DNA of 64,000 nucleotides from Heterodontus francisci (Eukaryota): the NCBI RefSeq assembly GCF_036365525.1, contig NC_090374.1, positions 14,735,168 through 14,799,167 of the forward strand, written 5' to 3'. This document shows positions 8,372-63,256 of the stretch, in pieces (within the stretch, counting starts at the first letter, position 1; each line of letters starts with the position of its first letter). The translations under genes were made by a program, and so were the position numbers. The notes beneath the pieces are model-generated. The model searched no databases and was not told the origin of the DNA. It saw only the letters and a program-made list of their open reading frames with translations.

Positions 8372-9094
8372 GGCCGGAATTGTACAGTGGGCGGACGGGA
8401 GCTGGACTCTGACGTAAGGGTTGGTGCCGAACCCACTTCCGCCCAGCCTGGGGATCCGTCCCGTATTTTACGGATTCCCAGGCTTTAATTGGCCCGAGGC
8501 AGGACTTCCATCCACTTGAGGGAGGAGGTCCTGCCTCAGTGAGCTGCCGGCCAATCAGCGGGCCAGCAGCTCTTAGTCTCAGCAGCACCACCGGGAGTGG
8601 TGGCCACTGCTGGGACTGCAGCCCAGCCGACTGAGCCGGATACCATGGAGCCGGGACTGAAGGTAAGTTTTGGTTGCCTCACCAGGGGAATCGGTCGTGC
8701 CCTGGTGAGGCTAGGGTGGTCGTTTGGGGGGAGGGGGGCATCTTGGATCGCGGGGTTGGGTTGGGAGGCGGGGGTGGCCCTCAATCGGGCACTCAGTGCC
8801 CGATTGCCAGGCACCCCCCCCCCCCCCCCCACCCGGGGTGCGGAAAGGCCGGCAGCTATAGCTGGCCGGCTTTTCACGTCCCCTGCACACCCGCTTGCCA
8901 CTGGTAAAATACCCATGGAGGCGGGCGAGGGCCCTTAAGTGGCCGTTAAGTGGCCGAACCCCCCCCGCCGTCGGACCTCCGTAAACATGGTCGGAGGTGG
9001 AATTGGGGTGGTTAGGTCTCCCGGAGCCTGCCAGTCAATTTTACGCTGCCCCCACGCCATCATGCAACCCGCCGGGCGGTGTAAAATTCCGGCC
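8372..9094. mobile_element. GC-rich MITE / non-autonomous DNA transposon (Harbinger-like)
   Basis: TIRs ggccggaattgtac...gtaaaattccggcc, CTT on both flanks, related copy at 60823-61466. Confidence 0.7.
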
Positions 9095-9174
9095 CTTGTG
9101 TTTTGCTAGGAATCTGACAGACTCTATCCCTCTCTGTTTCTCTGACTCTGACGGCTGCCCCCCTGGACTTTTAC

Positions 9175-9186
9175 CCACTCGTGATC
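9175..9186 (-). CDS. Paralog A 12-nt micro-exon (R-S-R-V)
   Basis: ttttattgtttcagtacag|GATCACGAGTGG|gtaaaa on the - strand, homologous to 26936-26947. Confidence 0.6.
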
Positions 9187-9265
9187 CTGTACTGAAACAA
9201 TAAAAAAACAATAAAATTTTGTGCAACAAAATGAATTTGAACAGTTAATATTAGAAAGCACCTAC

Positions 9266-9326
9266 TGTAACCCCGCACCGATACCGACAACAGGACAGTG
9301 GAAAGCCAAACGTAGAGAGAACTCAT
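9266..9326 (-). CDS. SIGLEC15-like: Paralog A leader exon (MSSLYVWLSTVLLSVSVRGY), divergently oriented
   Basis: Reverse complement closely matches 26800-26860. ATG and A|gtaggt donor are intact. Ig exons not seen; they may lie left of the window. Confidence 0.72.
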
Positions 9327-9419
9327 CGCCAACTCTTCGGTGTTTCGTCCTTCTCAGTCGCTGCTTCTTGTCTCTTTACACTGAAATATAGAAGTTGCTC
9401 AAAGTGTTTCTTCACTTCC

Positions 9420-9725
9420 TAAGAAACTTTGCAAAAACTGATGGAAATCTTCCTGAATTTACTGGCTAACAGGAAGTCTATTCATGTTGATTTGAAAAAG
9501 AGAGCAAAGTGTTGCTGACTAACAGACCAGGGATATTTATATAACTGTTGGCAAAAAGAGGGACAAACCACAGCATCAAGTGAGAATGAAAGATGCTGCA
9601 TTAGCTTCCAGTATTGTCAGAATGTCCATCAAACTCTATGGGGGTTAAATTGATTAGCAGGGAGGAGGAGTGTTGGGATGGCGTTAGGCGAATAACCCAC
9701 ATCCGTAGATTGTGCTGCACACAGC
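9420..9725 (-). promoter_or_regulatory. Putative promoter of paralog A (RUNX TGTGGTT, ETS GGAA cores, TGCTGACTAA MARE/AP-1-like, TATA-like)
   Basis: Block directly upstream of the leader, conserved with 58557-58850 and 63085-63256. Motifs read by eye. Confidence 0.45.
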
Positions 9726-9854
9726 AGATAGAATCTCTGCTGTCTACTGATTTCCATGATTACTGTGTGCAGGCAGTGTTACTCAAGCTGTTAATTGGCT
9801 GCAGGCATCGGAAGTGAGATTGAAATTGGAAGTCTGTAACGCCACTTAAGGCAT

Positions 9855-10285
9855 TTTTAAAAATTATTTCATGTGATGTGAACGTCACTGGCAAGTCCAG
9901 CATTTATTGCCTCCCTAAATGCCCTTGAGAAGGTGATGGTGAGACACCCTCTTGAACTGTTGCAGTCTGTGTACACCCACAATGCGGTTAGGAAGGGAAT
10001 CCAGGATTTTGACCCAGCAACAGTGAAGGAATGGCGATATAGTTCCAAGTCAGAATGGTGTGTGGCTTGGAGGGGAATTTGCAGGTGGTGGTGTTCCCAT
10101 GGGTCTGCTACACTTGTCCTTCTGGGTGGTAGACGATCGTAAGCTTGGAAGGTGCTGTTGAAGGATCCTTACTGAGTTGCAGCAATGCATCTTGTAGATG
10201 GTACACACTGCTGCTGTGGTGGGTTAGTGGTGAAGGGATTGAATGTTGAAGGTGGTGGATGGGTGCCAGTCAAGCGGGCTTCTTG
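9855..10285 (-). mobile_element. Old CR1-clade LINE 3' fragment
   Basis: Similar to 62640-62940 and to the rc of 27985-28150. Confidence 0.55.
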
Positions 10286-10704: not shown

Positions 10705-11038
10705 TTTTATTTTTTAAATTTTTTTTATTTAGAGACACAGCACTGAAACAGGCCCTTCAGCCCACCGAGTCTGTGCCGACCAACAGCCACCCATTTATAC
10801 TAACCCTACAGTAATCCCATATTCCCTATCACCTCCCTACACTAGGGGCAATTTACAACGGCCAATTTACCTATCACCTGCAAGTTTTTTGGTGGTGGAA
10901 GGAAACCGGAGCACCCGGCGAAAACCCACGCAGACACAGGGAGAACTTGCAAACTCCGCACAGGCAGTACCCAGAATTGAACCCGGGTCCCTGGAGCTGT
11001 GAGGCTGCGGTGCTAACCACTGCGCCACTGTGCTGCCC
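10705..11038 (-). mobile_element. V-SINE (HE1-like)
   Basis: Same family as 6478-6829. Confidence 0.88.
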
Positions 11039-11089
11039 ATGAACAATTGGAGGAGAGGGCTCAGCGACACGGGGTCAAAGTGAAAGGGT

Positions 11090-11410
11090 TATTTATTTTA
11101 TTTAGAGATACAGCACTGAAACAGGCCCTTCGGCTCACCGAGCCTGTGCCGACCAACAACCACCCATTTATACTAACCCTACAGTAATCCCATATTCCCT
11201 ACCACCTACCTACACTAGGGGCAATTTACTATGGCCAATTTACCTATCACCTGCAAGTCTTTGGCTGTGAGAGGAAACCGGAGCACCCAGCGAAAACCCA
11301 CGCGGTCACAGGAAAAACTTGCAAACTCCACACAGGCAGTACGCAGAATTGGACCCAGGTCCCTGGAGCTGTGAGGCTGCGGTGCTAACCACTGCGTCAC
11401 TGTGCCACCC
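11090..11410 (-). mobile_element. V-SINE (HE1-like)
   Basis: Same family as 6478-6829. Confidence 0.88.
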
Positions 11411-13945
11411 TTTAATTCACCTTTATCCACCTTGCTTGCTACTTCCTCGAAGAACTCTAATAAATTGGTTAAACACAATTTCCCTTTCACAAAACCATGT
11501 TGACTCTGTCTGATTCCATAACGATTTTCTAAGTATCCTACAATAACCTCCTTAATAATGGATTCTAGTCCTAGGACAGATGTTAGGCTAACTGGCCGAT
11601 AGTTTCTTGCTTTCTGTCTCCTTCCTTTCTTGAATAGTTACATTTACTACTTTCCAATTCACTGAAACCCTTCCAGAATCTGAGGAATTTTGGAAGATTA
11701 TAACCAAAGCCTCTACTATCTCTGCAGGCACTTCTTTTAAGACCCTAGGTTGCAGACCATCTGATCCTGGGGACTTGTCAACTTTAGGTCTAATAGTTTT
11801 CCCAGCAGCTTTTCCCTGGTGATGGTGATTGTTTTAAGTTTCTCCCTCCCTTTCGCCTCTTGATTTTCAAGTATTTTTGACAGGTTTTCTAAATCTTCTA
11901 CAGTGAAACAGACACAAAATTCCCATTCAACGCCTCTGCCATTTCCTTGTTTTCCATCATCAATTCCCCAGACTCAATCTCTAGATTAGTAACTAGCTTT
12001 AGTTACTCTTTTCCTATTTAAATACTTGTAGAAACTCTGACTGTTTTTCTATTACTAGCTAGTTTTTTCTCATACTCTACTTTCTCCCTCTTAATTTTTT
12101 TCTGTCATTTATTGCTGGTTCTTAAAATCTGTCCAATCTTCTGACCAACCACTAATCTTTGCAGACTTGTACAGTATTTGATACTAACCTTAACTTTCGC
12201 ATTTGGCCATGGATGATGCAGCCTTCTCAAATAATTTTTCTTTCTCACTGGGATAAATATTTGCTGAGAGTTATTAAATATCTCCTTAAAAGTCTGCAAC
12301 TTCCTCTCTGCTTATTTTCCTTTGTTTCCCAATTCACTTTGCCTTCATACCCTGTAGTTACCTTTATTTAGGTTTAAAACACTAGTCTTAGACCCACACC
12401 TCTCCCTTCAAACTGAGCGTGAAATTCTATCATGTTATGATCGCTGTCGCCTGGAGGCTCCTTTACCATGAGTTTATTGATTAATCACGTCTCATTGCAC
12501 GTTACCAGGTCTAGAATAGCCTGCTCCCTAGTTGGATTTACAACAAACTGCTGTAAGAAATTGTCCCAAATATACACTATGAACTCATTTTCCAGGTTAC
12601 CTTTACCAATCTGATTCGCCCAATCTACATGTAGATTAAGGTCACCCATGATTATTGTGTTACCTTTCTTACACAGCCCATTTATTTCTTCTCATATACT
12701 CTGTCCTAGCGTGTAGCAACTGTTAGGGGCCTATAAACTACTCTCTTACCTTTCTGATTTCTTATCTCTACCCAAACTGATTCTACATCTTGCTGTTCCA
12801 AGCTAAGGTCATCTCCTGCTACTGTACTAATGACATCCAAAATGTCAAATTCCCTTCAATATTCAGGTTGCAGCCTTAGTCACCTTGCAACAATGTCTCT
12901 GTAATGGCTATCAGGTCATGCATATTTATTTCTATCTGTGCCAACAATTCATCCATTTTGTTTTGAAAGCTGCATGCATTCAGATACAGAGTGTTTGTAT
13001 GCTCTGACTCTTACTGCCTTATCATTACCCAAATCTGTACCTTGCTCTATTACCTCATTGTTTCCCTGGGATTTAGCACATCTCCTCTCACATGAACCCT
13101 TCCTCCCACTATTTGGTTTCAAGCCCTCTATAAGACCTTAGTTATACAACTCATCAGAACACTCATCCCAGAATGGTTCAGGTGAAGACCATCCCAATAG
13201 TCCAGCTTCTACTTTCCCCAGTACTGCTGCCAGTGTCCCATGAATTGAAAACCATTTCTACCACACCAATCTTTGAGCTACTCAAGTAACTGTCTAATCT
13301 CATTTATCCTATGCCAGTTTGCTCGTGGCTCAGGTAATAATTCAGAGATTATTACCTTTGAGGTCCTGCTTTTTACTTTAACCTATAGCTGCTCATACTC
13401 CCTATGGAGAATCTCTTTCCTAGTTCTATCTATGTCACTGGTACCCACGTGGACCACGATAACTGGATCCTCCTCCTCCCATTGCAAGTTCCCTCCAGTC
13501 CCAAGGAGATGTCCCGAACCCTGGCACCGTGCAGGCAACACAGCCTTCTGGACTCTCACTCTTGGCCACAGAGAACTCTGTCTATCCCCCAGACTATACT
13601 GTCCCCTACTACCACGACATTCCTTTTTACTCCTCCACATCTGCCTTCTTGATCCCCTTACCTGCCTTATTCACATTCACACCCTCCTGTCCCTGACCAC
13701 TGACCAAATCAGAAGACCCTATCCTAAGAGGTGTAACTGCCTTCTGGAACAAAGTGTTCAGGTAACATTCCCCCTCCCTGATGCATCACAGTGTCTGCAG
13801 CTCGGCCTCCAGCTCATCTACTCTGAGCCGAATCTCCTGGAGCCACAGACATTTACTGCAGACATGATTGCTGTGGATTACATTGGAGTTCATGAGCTCC
13901 CACATACTGCAGCTGCCATAGATCACTTGCTCTGCCATCCTGATT
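11411..13945 (-). mobile_element. Old degenerate CR1 (ORF1 to mid-RT)
   Basis: Fragments GKLCLTNLLEFFEEV and VVHVGTSDI. Many stops and frameshifts. Confidence 0.8.
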
Positions 13946-14240: not shown

Positions 14241-14837
14241 TAATTATTTTCTTAATTAATTTGAATTAATGCCTCTCCTTGCCAGCACTTACTGTACTAA
14301 TTTAAACCTTGGTATTACAATAAATCTTACCGCTTAAAAATGAAACAATTCATTAGACTCACCAGCTTCTTACTTCCCTTCTACTTGAGTGTCTTAATTA
14401 ATTAGAAGGTAGCTACTTAAATTTTAATTTTAATTTTACATTTTTCTAATTTCCAACTATTAACACAAGCACCCTAACAGCAGTGTACTAACCTAGCTAT
14501 TTACAGATACTCCCTAAAACAGTTACTCACCAATCAATCACCTTCTCACTTTCCTGTGATGTCACTCTCAATCTCTGGGAAGCAATTTGCATGTTCTACA
14601 GCTACTGGAGGCTGAAAACGGAGCATCTCTTTACTCCTCTGCAGCAAATTCCCACATGAACCAAATTCCCACCTTCACACTCTGACTATGTCTCACTCAG
14701 GCTAAGTCTCCTCTCTGTGCAACCCTTACTGAAACTATTTGTTTAACTATCAACTAACTTAATAGAAAAATACCTAAGACTTAAGAACACATTCACCAGC
14801 TACTCACCATTCTTATTTAATCCCTTACACTAAACTT

Positions 14838-15003
14838 GGCAATGCCTCTACCTACTAGACCACAGGGAGAGCTCAGAACTGAAATAAATTAAAGTTCTCA
14901 TCAAGACACTGATCCATTCTGATGTCTGTCCTTTCCTCAGCTGCTGGTGGAAATGTCTCAGTGGTGACGAGGACCGAGGGAGCTTCAGTTACATTGCCCT
15001 GTA
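14838..15003 (+). pseudogene. Orphan fragment of a paralogous V2 exon (AAGGNVSVVTRTEGASVTLPC) with upstream intron, truncated by a CR1
   Basis: Near-identical to 38985-39053 + 39266-39362. Acceptor at 14939-14940. Stops at the CR1 3' tail at 15003. Confidence 0.85.
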
Positions 15004-18000
15004 TTAGAACATTACAGCGCAGGACAAGCCCTTCGGCCCTCGATGTTGCGCCGACCTGTGAAACCATCTGACCTACACTATTCCATTTTCATCCATATGT
15101 CTATCCAATGACCACTTAAATGCCCTTAAAGTTGGCGAGTCTACTACTGTTGCAGGCAGGGCGTTCCACACCCCTACTACTCTCTGAGTAAAGAAACTAC
15201 CTCTAACATCTGTCCTATATCTATCACCCCTCAACTTAAAGCTATGTCCCCTCGTGTTTGCCATCACCATCCGAGGAAAAAAGACTCTCACTATCCACCC
15301 TATCTAACCCTCTGATTATCTTATATGTCTCTATTAAGTCACCTCTCCTCCTCCTTCTCTCCACGAAAACAACCTCAAGTCCCTCAGCCTTTCCTCGTAA
15401 GACCTTCCCTCCATACCAGGCAACATCCTAGTAAACCTCCTCTGCACCCTTTCCATAGCTTCCACATCCTTCCTATAATGCGGTGACCAGAACTGCACGC
15501 AATACTCCAGGTGCGGCCTCACCAGAGTTTTGTACAGCTGCAGCATGACCTCGTGGCTCCGAAACTCGATCCCCCTACTAATAAAAGCTAACACACCATA
15601 TGCCTTCTTAACAGCCCTATTAACCTGGGTAGCAACTTTCAGGGATTTCACACTTTTCCGCATTAAACTCCATTTGCCATCTCTCAGCCCAGCTCTGCAG
15701 CCTATCTATGTCCCTCTGTAACCTACAACATCCTTCGGCACTATCCACAACTCCACCGACCTTCGTGTCATCCGCAAATTTACTAACCCACCCTTCTACA
15801 CCCTCATCCAGGTCATTTATAAAAATGACAAACAGCAGTGGCCCCAAAACAGATCCTTGCGGTACACCACTAGTAACTAAATTCCAGGATGAACATTTGC
15901 CATCAACCACCACCCTCTGTCTTCTTTCAGCTAGCCAATTTCTGATCCAAAGCTCTAAATCACATTCAACCCCATACTTCCGTATTTTCTGCAATAGCCT
16001 ACCGTGGGGAACCTTATCAAACGCCTTACTGAAATCCATATACACCACATCCACTGCTTTACCCTCATCCACCTGTTTGGTCACCTTCTCGAAAAACTCA
16101 ATGAGGTTTGTGAGGCACGACCTACCCTTCACAAAACCGTGCTGACTATCGCTAATGAACTTATTCTTTTCAAGATGATTATAAATCCTACGTCTTATAA
16201 CTTTTTCCAACATTTTACCCACAACCGAAGTAAGGCTCACAGGTCTATAATTACCAGGGTTGTCTCTACTCCCCTTCTTGAACAAGGGGACAACATTTGC
16301 TATCCTCCAGTCTTCCGGCACTATTCCTGTCGACAATGACGACATAAAGATCAAGGACAAAGGCTCTGCAATCTCCTCCCTGGCTTCCCACCGAATCCTA
16401 GGATATATCCCATCTGGCCCAGGGGACTTATCTATTTTCACACTTTCCAAAATTGCTAACACCTCCTCCTTGTGAACCTCAATCCCATCTAGCCTAGTAG
16501 TCTGAATCTCAGTATTCTCCTCGACAACATTTTCTTTCTCTACTGTAAATACTGACAAAAAATATTCATTTAACGCTTCCCCTATCTCCTCTGATTCCAC
16601 ACACAACTTCCCACTACTATCCTTGATTGGCCCTAATCTAACTCTAGTCATTCTTTTATTCCTGATATACCTATAGAAAGCCTTAGGGTTTTCCCTGATC
16701 CTATCCGCCAATGACTTCTCGTGTCCTCTCCTTGCTCTTCTTAGCTCTCCCTTTAGATCCTTCCTGGCTAGCTTGTAACTCTCAAGCGCCCTAACTGAGC
16801 CTTCATGTCTCATCCTAACATAAGCCTTCTTCTTCCTCTTGACAAGCGCTTCAACTTCTTTAGTAAACCACGGCTCCCTCGCTCGACAACTTCCTCCCTG
16901 CCTCACAGGTACATACTTATCAAGGACACGCAGTAGCTGCTCCTTGAATAAGCTCCACATTTCGATTGTTCACATCCCCTGCAGTTTCCTTCCCCATCCT
17001 ACGCATCCTAAATCTTGCCTAATCGCATCATAATTTCCTTTCCCCCAGCTATAATTGTTGCCCTGCGGTATATACCTGTCCCTGCCCATCGCTAAGGTAA
17101 ACCTAACCGAATTGTGATCACTATCACCAAAGTGCTCACCTACATCTTAATCTAACACCTGGCTGGGTTCATTACCCAGTACCAAATCCAATGTGGCATT
17201 GCCCCTGGTTGGCATGTCTACATACTGTGTCAGAAAACCCTCCTGCACACACTGGACAAAAACTGACCCATCTAAAGTACTCGAACTATAGTATTTCCAG
17301 TCAATATTTGGAAAGTTAAAGTCCCCCATAACAACTACCCTGTTACTCTCGCCCCTGTCGAGAATCATCTTCGCTATCCTTTCCTCTACATCTCTGGAAC
17401 TATTCAGAGTTCTATAGAAGACTCCCAACAGGGTGACCTCTCCTCTCTTGTTTCTAACCTCGGCCCATACTACCTCAGTGAACGAGTCCTCAAACGTCCT
17501 TTCTGTCGCTGTAATACTCTCCTTGATTAACAATGCCACACCCCCCCTCTTTTACCATCTTCTCTGTTCTTACTGAAACATCTAAATCCCGGAACCTGCA
17601 ACATCCATTCCTGCCCCTGCTCTACCCATGTCTCCGAAATGGCCACAACATCGAGATCCCAGGTACCAACCCATGCTGCAAGCTCACCCACCTTATTCCG
17701 GATGCTCCTGGCGTTGAAGTAGACACACTTTAAACCAAGTTCTTGCTTGCCAGTGCCCTCTTGCGTCCTTGTAACCTTATCCCTGACCTCACTACTCTCA
17801 ACATCCTGTACACTGGAACTACAATTTAGGTTCCCATCCCCCTGCTGTATTAGTTTAAACCCCCCCGAAGAACACTGGCAAATCTCCCCCCCAGGATATT
17901 GGTACCCCTCTGGTTCAGGTGAAGACCATCCTGTTTGTAGGGGTCCCACCTACCCCAGAAAGAGCCCCAATTATCCAGGAAACCAAAACCCTCCCTCCTA

Positions 18001-18855
18001 CACCATCCCTGCAGCCACGTGTTCAACTCCTCTCTCTCCCTATTCCTTGCTTCGCTATGACGTGGCACGGGCAACAACCCAGAGATAACAACTCTATTTG
18101 TTCTCGCTCTAAGCTTCCACCCTAGCTCCCTGAATTTCTGTCTTAAATCCCCATCTCTCTTCCTACCTATGTCGTTGGTGCCTATGTGGACCACGACTTG
18201 GGGCTGCTCCCCCTCCCCCTTAAGGATCCCAAAAACACGATCCGAGACATCACGAACCCTGGCACCTGGGAGGCAACACACCAACCGTGAGTCTCTCTCG
18301 CTCCCACAGAACCTCCTATCTGCTCCCCTAACTATGGAGTCCCCAATGACTAATGCTCTGCTCCTCTTCCCCCTTCCCTTCTGAGCAACAGGGACAGACT
18401 CTGTGCCAGATACCTGTACCCCATTGCTTACCCCTGGTAAGTCGTCCCCTGCAACGGTATCCAAAACGGTATACCTGTTGTTGAGGGAAACGGCCTTAGG
18501 GGATCCCTGCACTGCCTGCTGGTTCCCTCTCCTTCCCCTGACGGTAACCCATCTACCTACTTCTTTTACCTGAGGTGTGACTACCTCCCCATAACTCCTC
18601 TCAATAACCCCCTCCGCCTCCCGAATGATCCGAAGTTCATCCAGCTCCAGCTCCAGTTCCCTAACGCGGTTCTCGAGGAGCTGGAGTTGGGTGCACTTCC
18701 CGCAGATGCAGTCAGCAGGGACACTCTTGGCGACCCTTACCTCCCACATTCTGCAGGAGGAACATACAACTGCCTTAACCTCCATTCCCACTATTCTAAA
18801 TTCCCAACAAATCTACTGAAAAACCAAAACAAAAAGTCAAAACTTGTTAGGTTAG
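15003..18855 (-). mobile_element. Near full-length CR1: ORF1 intact, ORF2 frameshifted with a small internal deletion near 15645
   Basis: ORF1 17850-18791. ORF2 pieces 17527-17949, 17147-17539, 15620-16960, 15334-15663, 15073-15291. Confidence 0.93.
17850..18791 (-). CDS. CR1 ORF1 (zinc finger, coiled coil, SGNH/GDSL esterase), 313 aa
   Basis: CSSC..CGKC, LENRVRELELELDEL, LVIGDSIV, HIGTND, DGLHLN. Confidence 0.9.
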   Translation of the reverse strand: MGMEVKAVVCSSCRMWEVRVAKSVPADCICGKCTQLQLLENRVRELELELDELRIIREAEGVIERSYGEVVTPQVKEVGRWVTVRGRRGNQQAVQGSPKAVSLNNRYTVLDTVAGDDLPGVSNGVQVSGTESVPVAQKGRGKRSRALVIGDSIVRGADRRFCGSERDSRLVCCLPGARVRDVSDRVFGILKGEGEQPQVVVHIGTNDIGRKRDGDLRQKFRELGWKLRARTNRVVISGLLPVPRHSEARNREREELNTWLQGWCRREGFGFLDNWGSFWGRWDPYKQDGLHLNQRGTNILGGRFASVLRGGLN

Positions 18856-25950: not shown

Positions 25951-26799
25951 ATTTGATGGGGACAGTGTAGAGGGAGCTTTACTCTTGATCTAACCTGTGC
26001 TCTATCTGCCCTGCAAGTATTTGACGGGACAGTGTAAAGGGAGATTTATGTGGAGCCAAAATTACTTCCACCTTCTTTGTGATCTCCAATTGCACCCCAC
26101 TGTGCTTGGACAGTGACATATGGAATATGGAGAGGCTGCTGCCTAGGAGATGCCAGTCGATGGAGTTGCCATCTGTACAGAAGATAGAGGAAAGATTTTG
26201 AAGACTGCTGAGGTAACAGAACCCTATGCCTGTCATATCACATATCTTCTTGTGACTTTGATCAGAGAGGGCTCAGTGCTGTGGGCAGAATAGAAACTGG
26301 ACTGAAGCAATTCAAAAGTATAGTTGGATGGGAATGACATGTTAGAGACCTTTGAGTGCAAAGAAAAGTTGAAGATGGGTTGGGAGTTCGAAAAGACAGA
26401 GAGGTTGAGGTTAGGCTTTCAAAGATAGAAGGTGCAGTGACAGCAGTTTTAGAGAAGGGGAAATAAATACTGAGAAATACGAGAAGCTGATGATGTTGGC
26501 AGTTGGAGTTAGGATACAGATCAACGATGATCGAATTGAATGGTGGAGCAGGGTCGAGGGGCAGAATGGCCTCCTATTTCTACCTTCCTTTCTTCTTTCC
26601 CCCTACTGCCTCTTTGCCTTGTGGTATGAAGGCTTCCATTTTAGTTCAAAACAAACTGATTTCCTGTTCACTAATGCATTATGTGTAATTTCCTGTCAGA
26701 ATTTCACAATTAGTGAAGAAACACTTTGACCAACTTCTACATTTTGGATTTGAGACAAGAAGCAGAGAGAGAGAAGGACGAAACACTGAAGAGTTGGCA

Positions 26800-26860: not shown

Positions 26861-26935
26861 GTAGGTGCTTTCGAATAATAACTGTTCAAATTCATTTTGT
26901 TGCACAAATTGTCCTTTTTTATCATTTCGCTGCAG

Positions 26936-49286: not shown

Positions 49287-50306
49287 TGTTACGAGGGTTT
49301 CCATTTTTTGTTATAACTTGAGAATCTATATTTTAAAAACTGAAAAGGATTCCATGGATGCTGGAATCTTCAAGAAGCTGAACTTTGGATGTTTTTTTAT
49401 GGGAAGGTCAACAGAAGGTTGACCATTAAACAAATTTTACTGAAAAACATCGGTTTGCAAATAACCCAGCAGGGTGTTTGTGCTGTGACTCTGAAAAGGA
49501 TGTTTACAAGGAAATGACAAACCAAGATTTCAGGTTGTCATACAGCCTGCCTCTGGAAAAGCTTTTGTTTCATTTTGAACTCTTAAGAAAGGCCAGTGGT
49601 TGTTTGGCCAAGAACAGAAAGAAATTTGCTTCCTGACCTGCCAGAAGAAAACAGCTCTCTCTTTAAAGAATTCCTGCATCAAGTTGTATTGTTGCCTCCC
49701 TGTATTTGAAGAAATCCTGAATGTTTTCAGAAACCTTGCATCTTTGAAAGAACTTTGCATAGAATGTGCAAGAATTGAAACCTTTGTTACTGCACATCTG
49801 ATGTAAGACTTATGCAATGCCTTCCGTAGCTGCATCTCTTGAAAACCTACCTAGACTGTTCATCAACATTGTTGGAAAGAACTGTTCTAGGACGATTCCC
49901 AGTGGCAGCCACCTATTCGCCTTTGGGACACCTCGCCAACACAGAGGACTTCCATACCTTCTCTTCAGTCTCAGTTTTTTATTCCTTCCAACTGTAACAG
50001 TTGTAAACAAAAATCATTTTTTCTCCCGGTTAACCGGTTGTTTATGTGAGTGTGTGAGGGCGAGGATAAAAATAAAGGGTTTTAATATTTCAATTCGTGC
50101 ATATGTTTACTTCATTATTGGTTAAGACTTAGTTTATAATAAATGGATAATTTTGTTGTTTATTAAAAAATATCTGGTTGGTGTGCTTTATTCTGGAGTA
50201 AAATAGATTGGCTGTTTCAGTAAGTGGGAAAATTTAAATACATGTTGTGACCTGTGGAGAAGTGGGACTGAATTAACAGTGCACTCCTCCTGCCTCGGTT
50301 ATAACA
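49287..50306 (+). mobile_element. Second solo LTR (different family)
   Basis: TGTTAC...ATAACA termini; interrupts the antisense CR1 3' fragment 48200-50690. Confidence 0.7.
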
Positions 50307-50690: not shown

Positions 50691-50804
50691 TCTTTTTATG
50701 CTCGAAGGGTGACAGTATTAAACCTTTTCATTGTAAATACAACAGTATTAACTTGTCACTGTAAATACTACTGTATTAATCCCTGTCACTGTAAGTTTTT
50801 TTAT

Positions 50805-51097
50805 TAGAGTCATAGAAAGATACAGCACCGAAACAGGCCCTTCGGCCCACCGAGTCAGCACCGACCATCAACCACCCATTTATACTTATCCTACATTAAC
50901 CCCATATTCCCTCTCACATCCCTACCTTCCCTCAATTCTCCTAACATCTACCTACACTGGAGGCAATTTTACAATGGCCAATTTACCTATCAACCCTCAA
51001 GTCTTTGGCTGTGGGAGGAAACCGGAGCACCCGGAGGAAGCCCACACGGTCACAGGGAGAACTTGCAAACTCCGCACAGGCAGTACCCAGAATTGAA
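50805..51097 (-). mobile_element. V-SINE, 5'-truncated
   Basis: Same family as 6478-6829. Confidence 0.85.
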
Positions 51098-51324: not shown

Positions 51325-51424
51325 CTGCAGAGACTTTCCCCATTGCGATATTGTGCATTCCACTTGGAGTGAAACTCCTCGCCCTTATAGTGATGTGGAT
51401 TATTTTGTTGAGGGATAAATCCAG
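51325..51424 (+). CDS. SIGLEC15-like: Siglec-15-like gene B, transmembrane exon with intramembrane Lys (AAETFPIAILCIPLGVKLLALIVMWIILLRDKS)
   Basis: Acceptor tttctctttctgttcag|, donor AG|gtatgt. Phase 1 in frame with V2. About 23 hydrophobic residues with LGVKLL resembling Siglec-15 LGFKAL, followed by a basic stop-transfer. Confidence 0.85.
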
Positions 51425-52377
51425 GTATGTAATATTGCTGGGAGACTCTTGTCTTTAAATGCCTGAAGCTTGATTCATGGGTGAGCTTTGGTGGTGATTC
51501 AAACACTTGAGCCATTCTGGTCGATGAACAACCACACAGTGCATGTCCAGCAGAGGTCGCTGGATCCCAGCAGGATCAGGAACTCTGGGCAATGTTTCCT
51601 TTCCCTATCCCAGTAGCTCTTGGACCAATTGGAGAGCCCCGACTGCAGCCCAGCTGGGATTGGCTAACTCAGCCCAGACATGGGATGGAAACTGGCCCCT
51701 TCCTGGTCTGTATGATTCAGCTCCTCACAGCAGGAACTTGCTGAGCTATCGGGGACCTGATTAAATCTCCCAGACCACCTGTATTCACTATTGTCTATTT
51801 TAATCTGCAAGGTTAAGCCCTCAGGGCATATTATGGTTCAAAACTGATTGAGTTGAATTTGATTGCAGTGCTGGGTTATTGACAGTCAGATTCCTGTTCA
51901 CTTTCCAACCTCAGTCTTCCCCCAAGGCTTTCTGGAAAACACCAACCACTCACCTCAAGACCCGGAAAAAGAATAAAACACTCTGGGGATTGGCTGCTGT
52001 TCAGATGATGAGAATGATGGTTATCACAGTGTTGAAAATGATTTGCAGTTCCCTTTGACTCAGTTTTTGGTCACCTGTCCTCATATCTCCTCATGTGACT
52101 CGGTGTTCCATTTTGCCTGATTGTGTTCCTGTGAAGCACATGTTAAAAGTGCTATATAAATGCAAGTTTTTGTTCTTGCTATATAAACAAAGTGACTCCT
52201 GACATCGCAGCGGTCTGCTGACATAATCAGAGCGCTCCAAGCTGTGAACATGTGCAAACGGTCGCCTGCGCTGAGATGCTGCACATACTCAGCCTACGTC
52301 TTGCCAGGACTAACTGGTGCATGCGAAGGAAAACATTCTCCCCCCTCGCCCACTCACTCCCCACTCCTCGCTTCCAG

Positions 52378-52840
52378 CCACCCTGCTCTCCAGCTGCTCA
52401 CTCCCCTCTTCCGCCCACCATCCTGCTCTCCAGCTGCTCACTCCCCTCTTCCGCCCACCATCCTGCTCTCCAGCTGCTCACTCCCCTCTTCCGCCCACCA
52501 TCCTGCTCTCCAGCTGCTCACTCCCCTCTTCCGCCCACCATCCTGCTCTCCAGCTGCTCACTCCCCTCTTCCGCCCACCATCCTGCTCTCCAGCTGCTCA
52601 CTCCCCTCTTCCGCCCACCATCCTGCTCTCCAGCTGCTCACTCCCCTCTTCCGCCCACCATCCTGCTCTCCAGCTGCTCACTCCCCTCTTCCGCCCACCA
52701 TCCTGCTCTCCAGCTGCTCACTCCCCTCTTCCGCCCACCATCCTGCTCTCCGGCCGCTCACACCTCGCTTTCGTCCTCCCCCATCCTGCTCTCCGGCTTC
52801 TCAGTCCCCTCTTCCTCCCACCATCCCACTCTCCGGCCGC
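52378..52840. repeat. 40-bp tandem repeat (ccaccatcctgctctccagctgctcactcccctcttccgc), about 11 copies, followed by inverted copies at 52841-52995
   Basis: Directly visible. Confidence 0.95.
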
Positions 52841-53640
52841 TCGGGGAGTGAGCAGCCGGAGAGCAGGATGGTGGGGGGGGGAAGTGGGGAGTGTGCAGCC
52901 GGAGAGTGGGATGGGGGGGGGGAAGCGGGGAGTGAGCGGCCGGAGAGCAGGATGGGGGGTGAAGCGGGAAGTGAGTGAGCGGACAGCGGGATGGCACTGA
53001 AACCTCACTGAATTACGGAGGGTGTGCAGCACTGTCAGAGGTGCTGTCCTTCTGAGAAAGTTTAAACAGTGCAACGTTCTCCGAGTATCAACCAAAACAT
53101 GTCCATTGTCTGCTGTCATGTTTGCTTATGAAATGACAGTCACTGCTCCTAAAGTAATTCACTTTAGGTGAATTAAGATGACTAGCTACTAAATAACTGG
53201 CGCATGCGCAGGAGGGAGGGGAGACTGTTGGGGGTGGGATGGCGGTGGCAGCATAACAATATTTGAGTGGATCTTTGGGTTGAAGTTGTTTATCTGTGAT
53301 AAACAGATAAACCATCATTAATCCTGGCAGCTGCCTGAACGTCGCAGACACTGATGTTACAGTGGAACAGGCTGCATTTTCGCATGTGCTAGTACTGCGC
53401 CACCTGATGGTTGCGTTGTCAGCAAACGTCGCCCTTTATAAATGCAAGTTGTTGTTCTTGCTGAAAACAGGAACAACAATCAGACCCATTGTGTCAGTGT
53501 TTAACACTGATAATCTAATCTGTTTTTAAATACATGGGGAATCCTATGTAAACAGCTGCAGGTTGTATATGGCGGTTCTGAAAATGCTCTTATTTTACTG
53601 TTAATATGGCTCATTTTATTTAATCTTGTTTTGTCCCCAG

Positions 53641-53656: not shown

Positions 53657-54284
53657 TCCATCGCAGGAGGCTGAGAAACTGAATGTTCAAACCGCAATAT
53701 AAACCTGTTCCACTCGCCCTGCACTGAATCTCATCCAGCAATTTAAACTGGACTTGCTTTGGTCATCATTCACTGTGTGATCCTGGGTACTGAGTACAAA
53801 ATTCGTCCTGTTAATCAGCTATTCAGCAAGGTTCTGCATCACACTGTGATGATCATTTAGACTTAGTGGGACAGTGTAACATGGGTGATAGCGAATCAAC
53901 AGCCCGATTTAAATCCCTGACATTGGCTGGAATGGAAATAAAAATGGGGAGAGATATAAAACAGGCTGCTGATTGGCCGTTTTACACTATCACACAAAGT
54001 CCAGATGACCCCGTTACTCTGAATGGAATCTGAATGTGAACATTCTCAATATCAGTCTGTCTAAATGGCCAGGCTTTATTTATGGTGTAAACAGTGGGAG
54101 AGCTCATGGGGCAGAGGTGACTGTGAGTAGGACAGGTTTGAAACCCCAATTATTCCAGCTGCTTTGCTCAGGGAACTGGCTGCTGTTTCTAGCTCCTCGG
54201 CTGTGACGGGAGATTCTGCTGGAGGTCAGTCAGCTTTCAATAACTGATCTCAGAGTGAATCTGTGCTTTTACTGTCAGTCGATC

Positions 54285-54355
54285 AAAGTTACATGATGGA
54301 GCTGCAATGATTGTGAACACTGTACACAATCCTGGTAGCTCCATCATGTAACTTT
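54285..54355 (+). other. 71-nt hairpin with a perfect 19-bp outer stem (pre-miRNA-like)
   Basis: aaagttacatgatggagct (54285-54303) and its exact rc (54337-54355); inner gattgtg/cacaatc pairing; 9-nt loop. Confidence 0.6.
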
Positions 54356-55602
54356 CATGTGCTCTTGTGAAGTTCCTTTGGGACAATTCGCTACATTAAA
54401 GGTGTTATATAAATGCCAGTTATCGTTGTTGCTTCTACGAGGTGCTCTTAGTGGCTGGGAGCTTGGGCGGAGGAAGTCTGCTGAGCTTCAATTCAGACGG
54501 ACACTGCGGATGGCACTCTGGGCCTCGAGGGCTGGGCTGGAGATTGCACCATTCGGCCTGGGCTGCAGCATTCTGGGCAGCAAGGGCACTGGCAGAGTGT
54601 TTGGGTTGGATGCAGGAATGCTGTCATCATGACAGGGAACAGCAGGCTCCTCTTCTATGGAGCCACTGCCGGTCTCCCAGTGCCTCAGGAACCCTCACCA
54701 TCTGCTGGAGAACTGTTGCTGAACTGCTGCATTGATCTGGAATCCCATTTCAACAGTGGCACCCAGAGGTATATAATGGCAGCAGACTGAGACTCCAAGG
54801 CAGCAGTCTGTGCTGTGTTGGAAGCTCAGATTGTTAATCACACGCTCCAACAGGTTGGGTTCCGCCTGGAATGAATGAGCTCCAAAATCTGTGCAAAGCC
54901 CTGTGCCAAGGTTGGGGACTGACTCCTCCACGCTCCTTGATATTGTGCCCAGGCTTTTGGGCAGGATTTCCAGTTTACCGAGTACTTTGTTGAGCACGCC
55001 CATCAGCCTTCATCTGTAGCCTGGCTCATCCAAACTCCTCACCTGAGTTGTGTGCAGCAGAACTGTCTGCAACCTTCCCTCCGGCGAGCTGGCACATATG
55101 GGATCCTCCCACCGCTCCCCCAACTCCACAGCTCCTTGTGCCCGTGTTCCCTCATCTATACTAGCGTCTGAAGTCCACAGAGAGTCAGTCTCTGAGCTGC
55201 GAGAGTGAAATTAAGCAACAGTACTTCATCATCATCCATCTCCTTCCTCCACTGGCTGAACAGATTCTTCTTTGTGGGAGCTGAAATGAAAAGGCGAAAG
55301 GGTTAAGGTTGTGATTTGGTGAGAGGAGTGAGAGTGCGCTGACACCAGCTGCAATGTTTCATTCAGTCTGAGTGGGGTGGGGAAGAAGTGAGGACCGAGA
55401 AGGAAGATTAGGTTTACAGAAACCCTGATCATTGATCTCTCCAGCTTCACCAATCACCACAGCTTTAGTGATGCCCCTTCCCATTCCCAGTATTGCAAGA
55501 ATTGTCTGTTCCAGTTTCCTGGTGCTGCCTCCTGTTATCCCGCACCTTCTCCCACAAGGAAGAGAAAGTTCGTTAATGAGTGTTCAGCAATATGTCTCAG
55601 TG

Positions 55603-57520
55603 ATGTGGCTGTGTGTGTGTGTGTCTGTATCTGTGTGTGTGTGTGTCTGTATCTTTGTGTGTGTGTTTCTGTGTATCTGTGTGTGTGTCTGTGTGTGTAT
55701 GTTTGTATATCTGTATGTGTGCTGTGTGTGTATCTGTGTTGTATGTGTGTCTGTGTGTGTGTATCTGTTTGTATATCTGTGTGTGTAGATTGTGTGTCTG
55801 TGTGTGTGTGTATCTGTGTGTATCTGTGTCTGTTTGTATATCTGTGTGTGTGGTGTGTGTGTCTGTGTGTGTGTATCTGTTTGTATATCTGTGTGTGTAG
55901 ATTGTGTGTCTGTGTGTGTGTGTATCTGTGTGTATCTGTGTCTGTTTGTATATCTGTGTGTGTGGTGTGTGTGTCTGTGTGTGTGTATCTGTTTGTATAT
56001 CTGTGTGTGTAGATTGTGTNNNNNNNNNNNNNNNNNNNNNNNNNNNNNNNNNNNNNNNNNNNNNNNNNNNNNNNNNNNNNNNNNNNNNNNNNNNNNNNNN
56101 NNNNNNNNNNNNNNNNNNNNNNNNNNNNNNNNNNNNNNNNNNNNNNNNNNNNNNNNNNNNNNNNNNNNNNNNNNNNNNNNNNNNNNNNNNNNNNNNNNNN
56201 NNNNNNNNNNNNNNNNNNNNNNNNNNNNNNNNNNNNNNNNNNNNNNNNNNNNNNNNNNNNNNNNNNNNNNNNNNNNNNNNNNNNNNNNNNNNNNNNNNNN
56301 NNNNTGTATCTCTGTGTGTGTCTGTGTATGTATGTGTGTGTATCTGTTTGTATATCTGTATGTGTGGTGTGTGTGTGTCTCTGTTTGTATATCTGTGTGT
56401 GTGGTGTGTGTGTATCTGTGTTGTGTGTGTGTCTGTGTGTGTGTATCTGTTTGTATATCTGTGTGTGTAGATTGTGTGTCTGTGTGTGTGTGTATCTGTG
56501 TGTATCTGTGTCTGTTTGTATATCTGTGTGTGTGGTGTGTGTGTCTGTGTGTGTGTATCTGTTTGTATATCTGTGTGTGTAGATTGTNNNNNNNNNNNNN
56601 NNNNNNNNNNNNNNNNNNNNNNNNNNNNNNNNNNNNNNNNNNNNNNNNNNNNNNNNNNNNNNNNNNNNNNNNNNNNNNNNNNNNNNNNNNNNNNNNNNNN
56701 NNNNNNNNNNNNNNNNNGTGTGATGTGTGTNNNNNNNNNNNNNNNNNNNNNNNNNNNNNNNNNNNNNNNNNNNNNNNNNNNNNNNNNNNNNNNNNNNNNN
56801 NNNNNNNNNNNNNNNNNNNNNNNNNNNNNNNNNNNNNNNNNNNNNNNNNNNNNNNNNNTGTATCTCTGTGTGTGTCTGTGTATGTATGTGTGTGTATCTG
56901 TTTGTATATCTGTATGTGTGGTGTGTGTGTGTCTCTGTTTGTATATCTGTGTCTGTGGTGTGTGTGTATCTGTGTTGTGTGTGTGTCTGTGTGTGTGTAT
57001 CTATTTGTATATCTGTGTGTGTAGATTGTGTGTCTGTGTGTGTGTGTATCTGTGTCTGTTTGTATATCTGTGTGTGTGGTGTGTGTGTCTGTGTGTATCT
57101 GTTTGTATATCTGTGTGTGTAGATTGAGTNNNNNNNNNNNNNNNNNNNNNNNNNNNNNNNNNNNNNNNNNNNNNNNNNNNNNNNNNNNNNNNNNNNNNNN
57201 NNNNNNNNNNNNNNNNNNNNNNNNNNNNNNNNNNNNNNNNNNNNNNNNNNNNNNNNNGTGTTGTGTGTGTATCTGTTTGTATATCTGTGTGTGGTGTGTG
57301 TATCTGTGCGTGTTTGTGTGTGTGTGTATCTGTTTGTATATCTGTGTGTGTCGTGTGTGTGTGTATCTGTGTGTGTGTATCTGTTTGTATATCTGTGTGT
57401 GTGTGTGTGTATCTGTTTGTGTGTCTGTGTCGGTGTGTATCTCTGTGTGTGTCTGTGTATGTATGTGTGTGTATCTGTTTGTATATCTGTGTATGCGTCT
57501 GTGTGTGGTGTGAGTTGTGG
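55603..57520. repeat. GT-rich compound microsatellite with about 112-bp higher-order period; four N gaps
   Basis: gtagattgt recurs at 112-bp spacing. N runs at 56020-56304, 56588-56717, 56731-56858, 57130-57257. Confidence 0.95.
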
Positions 57521-57814
57521 GTGTAACCTTTTCTACAATGCTGAGTGTGAGAGTGTGATGTCAAGCCTGTTCATTGAAGTGTTCAGTACTGAGTAATAGA
57601 AATTGTGGGTAAGTGGGGGATAGGGATGATGTTAATTCAGCCACTGATGTGGCTAGTAGTGCAGCTGTCATTTGAAGTTTGATCTTAACTCAACAACTCT
57701 TGTCAGATAATTGAACTTCATCGACACTGTATCCAGGTACATGGCTCCACATTCCTTGTGTTTAGCTCCTCTGTAATCTCCTCCCCTTGCTTCCTCAGCA
57801 TGTGCTATGAAGTT

Positions 57815-58170
57815 TCCCTTCTCCTCAGGGATAGAGGATGCCCCATTCCTTCTCCTGAGGATATCCCTCCTCCACCTCCAGACCACCCATTTCTCCTCAG
57901 GGATGGAGAATGTCCCTCCTCCACCTCCAGCCCACCCACTTCCTCTCAGGGATAGAGGATGTCCTTCCTCCACCTCCAGATCACCCACTTCCTCTCAGGG
58001 ATAGAGGATGTCCCTCCTCCACCTCCAGACCACCCACTTCCTCTCAGGGATAGAGGATGTCCCTCCACCACCTCCAGACCACCCACTTCCTCTCAGGGAT
58101 AGAGGATGTCCCTCCTCCACCTCCAGACCACCCACTTCCTCTCAGGGATAGAGGATGTCCCTCCTCCTCT
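57815..58170. repeat. About 49-bp tandem repeat (cctctcagggatagaggatgtccctcctccacctccagaccacccactt), about 7 copies
   Basis: Directly visible. Confidence 0.92.
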
Positions 58171-58556: not shown

Positions 58557-59340
58557 TATTTGTGCAGCACAATCTACGGATGTGGGTTATTTGTCGAACG
58601 CCATCCCAACACTCCTCCTCCTCCCCGCTAATCAATTTATCCCCCATAGAGGTTGATGGACATTCTGACAATACTGGAAGCTGATGCAGCATCTGTCCTT
58701 CTCACTTGATGCTGTGGTTTGTCCCTCTTTTTTCCAACAGTTATATAAATATCCCTAGTCTGTTAGTCAGCAACACTTTGCTCTCTTTTTCAAATCAACA
58801 TGAAGAGACTTCCAGTTAGCTAGTAAATTCAGGAAGATTTATAAACTGATTGTGGGCAGGTTTCGCAGGAGGTGAAGGAACGCTTTGAGCAACTTCTGTA
58901 TTTCAGTTTCATGAGACAAGAAGCAGAGTGAGAAGGACGAAATACTGAAGAGTTGGCGATGGGTTCTCTCTACGTTTGGCTTTCCGCTGTCTTATTGTCG
59001 GTCTCGGTACGGAGTTACAGAAGGTGCTTTCGAATAATAACTGTTCAAATTCATTTTGTTGTTAAAGTCATTGAATGGTTACAGCACAGAAGGAGGCAGT
59101 TCAGCCCACCGTGTCTGTGCTGGCTCGCTGCATGAGCAACTCAGCTAGTCCCACTCCCTTGTCCTGTTCCCATAGCTTTGTAAATATTTTCTCTTCAGGT
59201 GTTTAGCATTCACTGTGTGATCCTGATACAGAGTGCAAAGTCCTTCATGTTAAACAACTCTTCAGCTCGTCTCTGATCACACACTCATTTCAAATGGAAT
59301 CTGAAAATGATCTTTCCCAACCTAAGTCTGTATAAATGCA
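58557..59340 (+). pseudogene. Paralog C: promoter + leader exon (58959-59019, MGSLYVWLSAVLLSVSVRSY) with donor GT>GA, gene body deleted, joined to a 3' UTR homolog
   Basis: Homologous to 9220-9725 (rc) and 26712-26901. Donor reads A|gaaggt. Micro-exon absent. 59205-59340 resembles 53766-53845 + 54015-54067. Confidence 0.75.
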
Positions 59341-60494: not shown

Positions 60495-60822
60495 CTGGCG
60501 ATTTGTGACATTTGGCCAGTTGCGCATCCACTTTAGTCAAGTGTTGTTGGTTAGGAAAGGCCAAGTAAAATATTTCAATATTTCAGTTTTTGTTTTGTAG
60601 AATGCAACAATTTTAGGGCCAAGAATTAAAGCAGAATTTATAAATCAAACGCTAACTGGGTAACCCAATTCCTGAGTTTTCTTTGGGGGGGGGGAGGTGT
60701 TACTGCTCAACCTTTTCTCTCTACCAGAGGTACCAGAGGGAACCAACCCATGTTCAATCCTTTTCTCGCTCACATTCTTGACATTTAACTCACATTCCTG
60801 GTGTTTTCCCCTTACATTCCTG

Positions 60823-61466
60823 GGCTGTAATTTTAGGTCACCCCCACCATCGAGCAGGGTGGTGGCAGGGCCGCTCCTGACACCTTCCTGCCCCCCTGCA
60901 ATTTTATGTGGGGTGGTGGTGAGAAACAGCCCACCCATCCAGGCCAATTAACTGCCACTTAAGGGCCTCCTCCCACCGCCACTATTATTTTACAGCAAAG
61001 GCCCCAAGCACACTGCCAGCCAAAAGCTGGCTGCATTATTATGGGCTGGAAAGGGAGTTCTCCTGATTGGGCACCTTGTGCCCCACAGAGGGCCCCCCCC
61101 ACGACCCAACTCCACAACACTTCCCCCTCACCGCCCCCTACCCAACTGCCTCGTCGGGGCCTGGCTGATTGTCCCTGATGAGTCCCCAAAAACTGACTTT
61201 AATTCCGGGCACAGACTTCCTCGTGCTTCCGCTGGCTGGGTGTAGTCTCAGCTGTGGCCACCACTCCCAGTGACGCTGCTGGGACTACAGCCGATTGGCT
61301 GGCAGCTCCATTAGGCGGGACTTCCTGCCTAAAGCAGGTCGAAGTCCTGCCCGGGGCCAATTAAGGGCTTGGGAAGTGAAAAATCCTGGCTTTGCTCCCC
61401 CCGGGCAGCCACCCCCAACTTTTCGGCCGGTGGGTGGGGCCTCCCGTCCAACATAAAATTCCGGCC
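60823..61466. mobile_element. GC-rich MITE, same family as 8372-9094
   Basis: ggctgtaatttta...taaaattccggcc ends; shared internal motifs (ggccaattaa, gtggccac, gctgctgggact). Confidence 0.65.
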
Positions 61467-61502
61467 TTGATGTTTTTCCTTCGCGTTACTAGCGTTTACG
61501 GG

Positions 61503-61620
61503 TGTGACGGGAGATTCTGCTGGAGGTCAGTCAGCTTTCAATAACTGATCTCAGAGTGAATCTGTGCTTTTACTGTCAGTCGATCAAAGTTACATGATGG
61601 AGCTGCAATGATTGTGAACA
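61503..61620 (+). repeat. 118-bp exact duplicate of 54202-54319, followed by AATAAA
   Basis: Base-by-base comparison found no mismatch. Confidence 0.9.
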
Positions 61621-62271
61621 GTGCAATAAATAATTCTTTGTGTATGTACTTTGGCTCCTCCTTTGCATCGCCTTTTACTACATTTCATAGAATCATACAG
61701 CACAGAAGGAGGCCATTCGGCCAATTGTGCCTGTACTACCTCCTTGAAAGAGAGTTCCAATTAGTTCGACTCAACTGCTCTTTCCCCATAACCCTGCAAA
61801 GTCTTCCCTTTCAAATATTTATCCAATTCCCTTTTGAAAGTTACTATTGAATCAGGCAGAACATTCCAGATCAGAACTCACTGTGTAAAAAATGTCTCCT
61901 CTTGTCACAGATCAGGCAGCATCTGTGGAGTGAGAAACAGAGTTAACATTACTATTGAATCCGCTTCCACTGCCCTTTCAGGCAGTGCATTCCAGATCAC
62001 AACAACTCGCTGTGTAAAATAACTGTCTCCTCATCTCACTTCTGCTTCTGGTTCTTTCTTAGCTCTGTGTCCTTTGGTCACTGAACACTTGAGAACCAAT
62101 TTTGGGATGTGGTAGCCCTGGTAAGGCCAGCATTTATTGCCCATTCTAATATGAATAGGAAGGGAATAGAGGTTTATGGGCCCCGGAAGTGCAGAAGGTG
62201 TTAGTTTCGGCAGGCATCAAGATCGGCGCAGGCTTGGAGGGCCGAATGGCCTGTTCCTGTGCTGTACTGTT

Positions 62272-62621
62272 CTTTTTTTTTAGAGATACAGCACTGAAAC
62301 AGGCCCTTCGGCCCACCGAGTCTGTGCCGACCATCAACCACCCATTTTATACTAATGCTACACTAATCCCATATTCCTACCACATCCCCACCTGTCCCTA
62401 TATTTCCCTACCACCTACCTATACTAGGGGCAATTTATAATGGCCAATTTACCTACCAACCTGCAAGTCTTTTGGCTGTGGGAGGAAACCGGAGCACCCG
62501 GAGAAAACCCACGCAGACACAGGGAGAACTTGCAAACTCCACACAGGCAGTACCCAGAATTGAACCCAGGTCGCTGGAGCTGTGAGGCTGCGGTGCTAAC
62601 CACTGCGCCACTGTGCCGCCG
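62272..62621 (-). mobile_element. V-SINE, full length
   Basis: Same family as 6478-6829. Confidence 0.9.
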
Positions 62622-63084
62622 CTCTTTGTACCCTTGAGAAGGTGGTGGTGGGTCATGTGGGTTCTCTTGTTGAATCACTGCAGGCTGTGTGGTGATGGTC
62701 CTCCCACAATGCTGTCAGGGTAGGAGTTTGAGGAGTTTGACCCAGAGACAATGAAGGAACAACATTTGGATGGAGTGTGACTTAGAGGAGAACGTGGAAG
62801 TGATGGTGTTTCCATATACCTCCTGCCCTTGTTCTTCTAGCTCGTGGCTTTGGGAGGTGCTGCTGAAGAAGCTTTGGTGAGTTGTCCATTCGATATTACA
62901 CGTTGTAGCTACAATTTGCCAGTGATGGAGGGAGTGAATGTTTAACGAATGTAATTGAGATAAATTTATATCCCATCAGGTCAGTATTTGATAGGACTGT
63001 GTAGAAGGAGCGCTACTCTCTATCGAACCCGTGCAGTACCTGCTGTGATGTTTGATGGGACAGAGTACAGGAAGCTAGCTGTTC

Positions 63085-63256
63085 CGTGCAGTGCTATCGA
63101 CGGATGTGGGTTAATCGTCATCCCCACACCCAATCTCCCCATGAATTAATTTAAAGTTTGCTGGACATTCTGATAACAATACTGAAAGCTAATGCAGCAT
63201 CTTTCATTCTCACGTGATGCTGTGGTTTGCGCCTCTTGTTTGCCAACAGTTATATC
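63085..63256 (+). promoter_or_regulatory. Isolated further copy of the family upstream/promoter block, truncated by an LTR fragment
   Basis: ggatgtgggtta..ggacattctga..aatactg..gctaatgcagcatctttcattctcac.tgatgctgtggtttg..ccaacagttatat matches 58562-58746. Confidence 0.65.

Follow-up and report, generated by a model that had tools for sequence, protein, structure and literature searches.

The window analyzed here, a 64-kb stretch of a Heterodontus francisci (horn shark) chromosome whose positions serve as coordinates throughout, is very probably a piece of a cluster of paired receptors derived from Siglec-15. It would comprise a complete gene (A), the first exon and promoter of a second gene (B), and three dead remains, in a family that turns over by duplication, by exchange between its members, and by loss through transposons and repeats. 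SIGLEC15 is a conserved single-copy gene in mammals, in which the expanding Siglecs are those of the CD33-related branch only. Long and short interspersed nuclear elements (LINEs and SINEs) and satellites make up the bulk of this vertebrate DNA, and a six-frame scan revealed two V-type immunoglobulin (Ig) exons, at 37.6 and 39.3 kb. Both belong to gene A, which has the following coding exons:

26800-26860, plus strand: leader exon, from the ATG to the donor CA/GTAGGT (phase 1); 100% identical to residues 1-20 of P0164
37603-37995, plus strand: V1 exon, a Siglec-15-type V-set with four cysteines and a CRVE arginine; maps to P0164
39299-39649, plus strand: V2 exon, a second V-set (Pfam E 1.7e-16) in which leucine replaces the arginine
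51325-51424, plus strand: transmembrane (TM) exon, with a lysine in the context IPLGVKLLAL; 100% identical to residues 269-302 of P0164
53641-53702, plus strand: tail exon, read against the isoforms P0214 and P0164

Gene A is the RefSeq model P0164 (XP_067885291.1, SIGLEC15 isoform X1, H. francisci), all coding exons of which map to the window at 100%. The leader encodes MSSLYVWLSAVLLSVSVRGS, and the first Ig domain (V1, 37605-37994) matches the Pfam V-set with an E-value of 3e-13; no C2 exon was found in gene A or in P0164. The tail exon has two acceptors 4 bases apart that shift the reading frame, the one at 53641 giving RKEQD and a stop and the one at 53645 giving RSRTDPSQEAEKLNVQTAI and a stop, and the choice between them matches the RefSeq isoforms, with X2 (P0214) ending in RKEQD and X1 (P0164) in RSRTDPSQEAEKLNVQTAI. 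The isoforms of gene B show the same pair of alternative tails. With a leader, V1, V2, a lysine-bearing span, and a short tail, gene A would be a complete activating gene. When the V1, V2, and TM exons were each searched singly, tblastn across the window found no copy of any of them besides those reported here.

V1 descends from the V domain of Siglec-15. Its best match in the PDB is human Siglec-15 (7ZOZ, E 5e-18), compared with an E-value of 5e-5 for CD33. The Siglec-15 V domain is characterized by W44, the disulfides C64-C142 and C95-C104, and the sialic-acid-binding R143 on strand F (PMC10264397). In the alignment of V1 to human Siglec-15, W44, both cysteine pairs, and the CRVE arginine equivalent to R143 are kept, such that the two intradomain disulfides of Siglec-15 are predicted in V1 from four aligned cysteines, and the CRVE arginine is present in all ten horn-shark paralogues compared. 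Siglec-15 has a V-C2 architecture (PMC10264397), whereas the second domain of gene A is a V-set. The lysine in the TM span is found in gene A and the other activating paralogues and is absent from those whose tails carry an immunoreceptor tyrosine-based inhibitory motif (ITIM), and the TM motif PLG(V/I)K is common to the shark family and bird Siglec-15. The original prediction that Siglec-15 itself seeded a diversifying family in this lineage is supported.

The shark genes are not one-to-one orthologs of Siglec-15, given that one species carries at least 11 gene models and that a separate lineage with a V-V-C2 architecture coexists with the V-V genes in a shark. A V1 search of 1.84 billion representatives returned 230 relatives, and a second search from the nearest V1 match returned 59 shark and ray relatives at E<=1e-10. 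Six 90% clusters contained 23 horn-shark sequences, which correspond to the at least 11 gene models, with at least seven on the 212-Mb chromosome of gene A and at least four on an unplaced 534-kb scaffold. The family is physically clustered, in that 64 kb contain gene A, the 5′ end of gene B, and three relics, and other models lie on the same 212-Mb chromosome. Its members have been named "SIGLEC15", "uncharacterized", "JAML-like", or "pIgR-like" in the databases and were never marked as one family, and in the literature searched we found no published description of a Siglec-15-derived family in sharks or rays.

Both signaling types are represented among the horn-shark genes. The activating genes are A, B, XP_067885083, and XP_067885084 on the chromosome and at least four on the 534-kb scaffold. 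Three genes are of the inhibitory type (XP_067885252-60, -261-64, and -265/66), with an uncharged span and tails ending in V-I/T-Y-A-A-V. The ITIM-tailed models without a TM lysine (P0222/P0161, P0226, and P0163) have ectodomains 89-93% identical to those of activating genes, and across the lysine-TM and ITIM-tailed types together, the horn-shark ectodomains are 89-97% identical. Lysine-TM and uncharged/ITIM forms were also both found in many sharks and rays. The complete paralogues that the original prediction called for, and the paired activating and inhibitory members that it thought possible nearby, therefore exist.

The horn-shark genes are mosaics of one another. In the four-gamete test, 178 of 276 informative site pairs were incompatible among the horn-shark paralogues, and variants have therefore been shuffled among these genes. 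Much of the near-identity of the paralogues comes from gene conversion or recombination, besides recent births. In the V1 tree, ten of ten horn-shark genes form a single clade (97/96) in which the activating genes are interspersed among the inhibitory ones; the carpet sharks and the rays form clades of their own. Births specific to each lineage, combined with gene conversion, would give such a pattern, and the relics in the window document deaths.

The origin of the two-V architecture can be traced within the cartilaginous fishes. Callorhinchus has V-V-C2 genes in both lysine-TM (P0029) and ITIM-tailed (P0229) forms, and in the shark Heptranchias a V-V-C2 gene (P0026) occurs alongside genes of the V-V type. 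In the domain tree, the family V1s stand beside the Siglec-15 V domains of bony vertebrates, and the family V2 clusters (100/97) with the V domain nearest the membrane in the V-V-C2 proteins of Callorhinchus and Heptranchias. V2 is therefore old, and the elasmobranch V-V family branched off with loss of C2. The family comes from a chondrichthyan V-V-C2 Siglec-15-like form and stands beside it as an offshoot, given that this form is still extant in Callorhinchus and Heptranchias. Gar, lungfish, and newt acquired their multi-V forms independently.

The losses that accompany such growth are visible within the window. The first of the three dead remains is a V2 exon cut by a LINE:

14829-15004, plus strand: orphan piece comprising part of intron 2 and the first 64 bases of a V2 exon; the exon portion (14941-15004) has an open frame and encodes AAGGNVSVVTRTEGASVTLPC
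15003-18800, minus strand: young LINE that meets the V2 fragment at codon LPC/M precisely with its 3′ terminus; the 5′ end at ~18800 is approximate

The fragment had been noted at 14838-15003 as an orphan V2 piece, and it is a real one. Its two parts (14829-14907 and 14903-15004) are 96% identical to gene A at 38975-39053 and 39261-39362, its tblastn E-value is 3e-7, and it is ended by the LINE 3′ terminus. It bears substitutions of its own (S-to-G and G-to-R), and relative to it, gene A has an additional 207-base SINE in intron 2. The remainder of the cut exon was not found beyond the LINE nor elsewhere in the window. A second LINE copy (6685-8164) is 96% identical to that at 15003-18800 over the 3′ 650 bases and shares its terminus, at 8164; the LINE family is young and probably recently active, and probably struck an exon of the receptor family. 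The V2 piece may have been carried by LINE 3′ transduction.

The other two remains, copies C and D, are related to the upstream region of gene B, with which they are listed here:

9094-9731, minus strand: gene B block of putative promoter, 5′ untranslated region (UTR), leader, and intron 1; 82% identical to A, 89.7% to C, and 77% to D
9266-9326, minus strand: gene B leader exon; 100% identical over 20 residues to P0216, GT donor kept
58561-59061, plus strand: copy C, running from the putative promoter block through the 5′ UTR and leader into 40 bases of intron 1; identity 89.7% with B and 87% with A
59062-59206, no strand given: SINE/LINE-tail fragment at the junction of the copy C internal deletion
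59207-59338, plus strand: remnants of the copy C 3′ UTR and 3′ flank (59207-59282 and 59293-59338), collinear with A
61499-61623, plus strand: copy C 3′-flank block with no exon; 98.4% identical to A 54198-54322, ~500 bases beyond the A stop codon
63075-63259, plus strand: copy D, an orphan piece (185 bases) of the upstream, TATA-side part of the putative promoter block

In copy C, the leader (58959-59019) begins MGSLYVW and ends VRSY, with three amino-acid changes, and the splice donor that follows has changed from GT to GA (59020-59021). The remnants after the junction are 79.5% identical to A 53767-53844 and 80.4% identical to A 54022-54067, and the junction repeat also occurs at 39179-39249, 50796-50856, 61696-61737, and 10737-10776. 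Nearly all of the sequence between intron 1 and the 3′ UTR has gone from copy C, and so has its leader splice donor. We noted that the block at 61499-61623 has 98.4% identity against ~80% in the adjacent collinear blocks, an excess that is unexplained and that may reflect recent conversion or a young small repeat; the corresponding block of gene A (54198-54322) forms a hairpin with 54318-54358. The collapsed pseudogene proposed at 58557-59340, with 61503-61620, is thus real, the latter part corresponding to the 3′ flank of gene A and to no exon.

Copy D aligns to B 9535-9731 at 77% identity (E 1e-39) and to C 58562-58750 at 74%, and no 5′ UTR or leader follows the block in the alignment. The lone promoter placed at 63085-63256 therefore holds as a real copy of the upstream block of B and C. 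Just past it, 143 bases (63293-63435) are 74.5% identical to gene A intron 3 at 49823-49965, 1.4 kb before the TM exon, and may represent either a repeat of low copy number or another relic of the dead copy to which D belongs. The retention of a TATA-bearing block, a 5′ UTR, and an ATG in copy C could suggest that C and D are live, as alternative promoters or first exons of, for example, a non-coding transcript or a gene past the window end. However, the copy C donor reads GA, a SINE piece and 3′ UTR remnants follow its leader within 200 bases, no RefSeq protein retrieved begins with or otherwise matches this leader, and copy D is without leader or 5′ UTR, and we consider live copies unlikely.

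Gene B is of a different kind. Within its block, 9094-9416 (minus strand) matches A 26712-27030 at 82% identity (E 5e-88), the whole block (9094-9731) includes TATAAATA ~185 bases before the ATG, and the leader encodes MSSLYVWLSTVLLSVSVRGY. This is identical (100%) to the first 20 residues of P0216, P0219, and P0227 (XP_067885299, -300, and -304), which are isoforms of one complete V-V-TM(Lys) gene, and among the horn-shark models retrieved, this N-terminus is unique to that gene. Because of this exact match to RefSeq isoforms of a complete gene, we regard the leader as a live exon and not a relic; it is most likely the first coding exon of a divergently transcribed neighbor, a second activating gene whose V1, V2, and TM exons would lie before the window start. 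Given that the match spans only 20 residues and that the family leaders are highly similar, the leader might instead be an orphan, with the RefSeq model drawing its exon 1 from another, identical copy. This is less likely still than live copies C and D, as the combination of T10 and RGY is unique among the horn-shark models retrieved, the donor and frame are intact, and the RefSeq accession numbers of A and B are close together.

The original prediction had described the region as a birth-and-death cluster, with relics at five places outside the intact gene. The description is partly borne out. All five are real homologues of parts of that gene, with similarity well above chance, but two of the labels are wrong, among them that of the inverted leader at 9175-9326, which matches a RefSeq first exon. 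A 12-base micro-exon had been proposed alongside this leader (B 9186-9175; A 26936-26947). In both genes this candidate keeps the reading frame and has usable splice sites, and it is therefore possible by sequence, though it is absent from every RefSeq isoform retrieved and from every homologue seen.

The window is repeat-rich and contains four runs of N (56020-56304, 56588-56717, 56731-56858, and 57130-57257), all within one tandem array between gene A and copy C:

55604-57530, strand not applicable: TG-rich tandem array, delimited by Tandem Repeats Finder, its T+G profile, and the gap flanks

This array has a higher-order unit of ~550 bases, and the N runs recur, often at the same unit phase. 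Array letters flank every N run on both sides, no reading frame is involved, and the closest claimed element or exon is >1.3 kb from any N run. These gaps, together with the unplaced 534-kb scaffold that bears near-identical family genes, could indicate that assembly errors, such as haplotigs and chimeric or collapsed contigs, produced the fragments in a repeat-rich and recently duplicated region. The fragments, however, differ from gene A by 4-26% and carry substitutions of their own (the GA donor of copy C; S-to-G and G-to-R in the V2 piece), their junctions with transposons are clean, and no fragment touches a gap, which makes an artefact very unlikely. Least likely of all is that the leader/promoter block came to lie beside Ig exons by chance, as some mobile or dispersed repeat. 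The block does occur three to four times within 64 kb of mostly LINE, SINE, and satellite sequence, once (copy D) without exons, but it is without transposon hallmarks, its copies keep a gene-like order (promoter, 5′ UTR, ATG, donor), and its leader, tied to Ig genes as the original prediction needed it to be, forms the N-terminus of RefSeq family models in many sharks and rays.

We therefore favor a cluster of Siglec-15-derived paired receptors, in which the family would grow by local duplication, exchange of sequence between activating and inhibitory members (by gene conversion or recombination) would homogenize and reshuffle it, and copies would be lost by retrotransposon insertion (as in the LINE-cut V2 exon) and by repeat-mediated deletion. 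In function, V1 may bind sialic acids via its conserved arginine, the lysine-bearing members may signal through an adaptor of the DAP12/DAP10 type, and the ITIM-tailed members may inhibit. Human Siglec-15 contacts sialic acid through Y87 in the C-C′ region and residues 147-155 of the G strand (PMC10264397). Of the 27 variable V1 sites, 17 fall in two patches (residues 63-72 and 128-143) that align with Y87 and with 147-155, the G-strand alignment being by position only, and the variable loops may reflect selection by ligands or pathogens.

Several points weigh against this interpretation. The two V1 patches were chosen after the data had been seen, and relaxed constraint may lie behind the variable sites. 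The true distance and continuity between gene A and copy C are unproven, since N runs intervene. The link of the gene B leader to V1, V2, and TM exons depends on an exact match of 20 residues. Sequence features likewise underlie the proposals that copies C and D are silent, that the gene B leader is used, and that the upstream block acts as a promoter. Furthermore, gene A is without the ~310-base TATA-bearing upstream block common to B, C, and D, which weakens the label of promoter; gene A may have a different promoter. Upstream of gene A, the homology fades at ~26625-26712, and a transposon-like piece is seen at 26518-26575 (26400-26712 compared with 9416-9731, 58561-58871, and 63075-63259).

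Two further candidates for shared descent within the window were rejected. The segment at 10711-13265, which is inverted and collinear with gene A intron 3 (40100-47286), was considered as a further pseudogene and proved to be a LINE copy with esterase-like and reverse transcriptase-like open reading frames. The similarity between 60942-61460 and gene B intron 1 (8475-9093) was due to the same transposon inserted twice. Regarding the remaining repeats, gene A intron 1 is filled by a 69-base satellite of ~79 units (28830-34268) with a 1241-base higher-order repeat (31747 onward matching 32988 onward), at the end of which lies a minus-strand LINE (34320-36524). The TM-tail intron of gene A contains a 40-base tandem repeat (12 copies, 92% alike), followed directly by a 41-base array that resembles its reverse complement (both in 52353-52994). 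A 49-base tandem repeat (6.3 copies, 94% alike) occupies 57857-58167, just upstream of copy C, and the tRNA-like end of a SINE lies at 62477-62522.

Among the closest known systems, the Siglec-15 of bony vertebrates (human Q6ZMC9, 7ZOZ) also has a short tail and a membrane span whose lysine lies in a comparable PLG-x-K setting; the shark genes differ by a second V in place of C2, by their number (at least 11), and by the existence of ITIM-tailed members. The chondrichthyan V-V-C2 genes (Callorhinchus LOC103174418/LOC103188797; Heptranchias XP_067838218) have the same V1 and V2 types, also in lysine-TM and ITIM forms, but keep C2, which was lost in the elasmobranch V-V family, a well-supported clade of its own.

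The mammalian CD33-related Siglecs are alike in their clustering, fast turnover, pairing of charged-TM (DAP12) with ITIM forms, gene conversion, and pseudogenes, and differ in their V-domain lineage (CD33 E 5e-5), their V-C2n architecture, and their independent origin. Near-identical ectodomains on opposite signaling modules, clustering, lineage-specific clades, and gene debris are also seen in other paired Ig-type families of the birth-and-death kind, namely KIR, LILR, PILR, the teleost NITR, and the skate MDIR. The last of these is an elasmobranch activating/inhibitory Ig family already described, with domains reported to be CD300/TREM/pIgR-like (PMC3031540). Indirectly, the V1 scores of E ~5e-3 for pIgR and E 5e-18 for Siglec-15 make it unlikely that the shark family is MDIR.

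More speculatively, sharks and rays may have independently made the Siglec-15 lineage into fast-evolving sensors of sialic-acid "self" similar to the CD33-related Siglecs. Inhibitory members would be paired with activating counterparts of the same binding face, the two sialic-acid loop patches would have been diversified and reshuffled under pathogen pressure, and this arms race would have left its losers as the relics seen here; we hold this scenario to be possible but somewhat improbable. At the level of annotation, the finding indicates that scattered database names hide one family. For the Siglec-15 branch, it would mean that this branch has itself become a paired-receptor family, with a new V-V architecture, activating/inhibitory pairing, and turnover visible within 64 kb. 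Such a family would give comparative immunology an independent second case of paired Siglecs, with which one could ask whether sialic-acid sensing repeatedly drives evolution of this kind.

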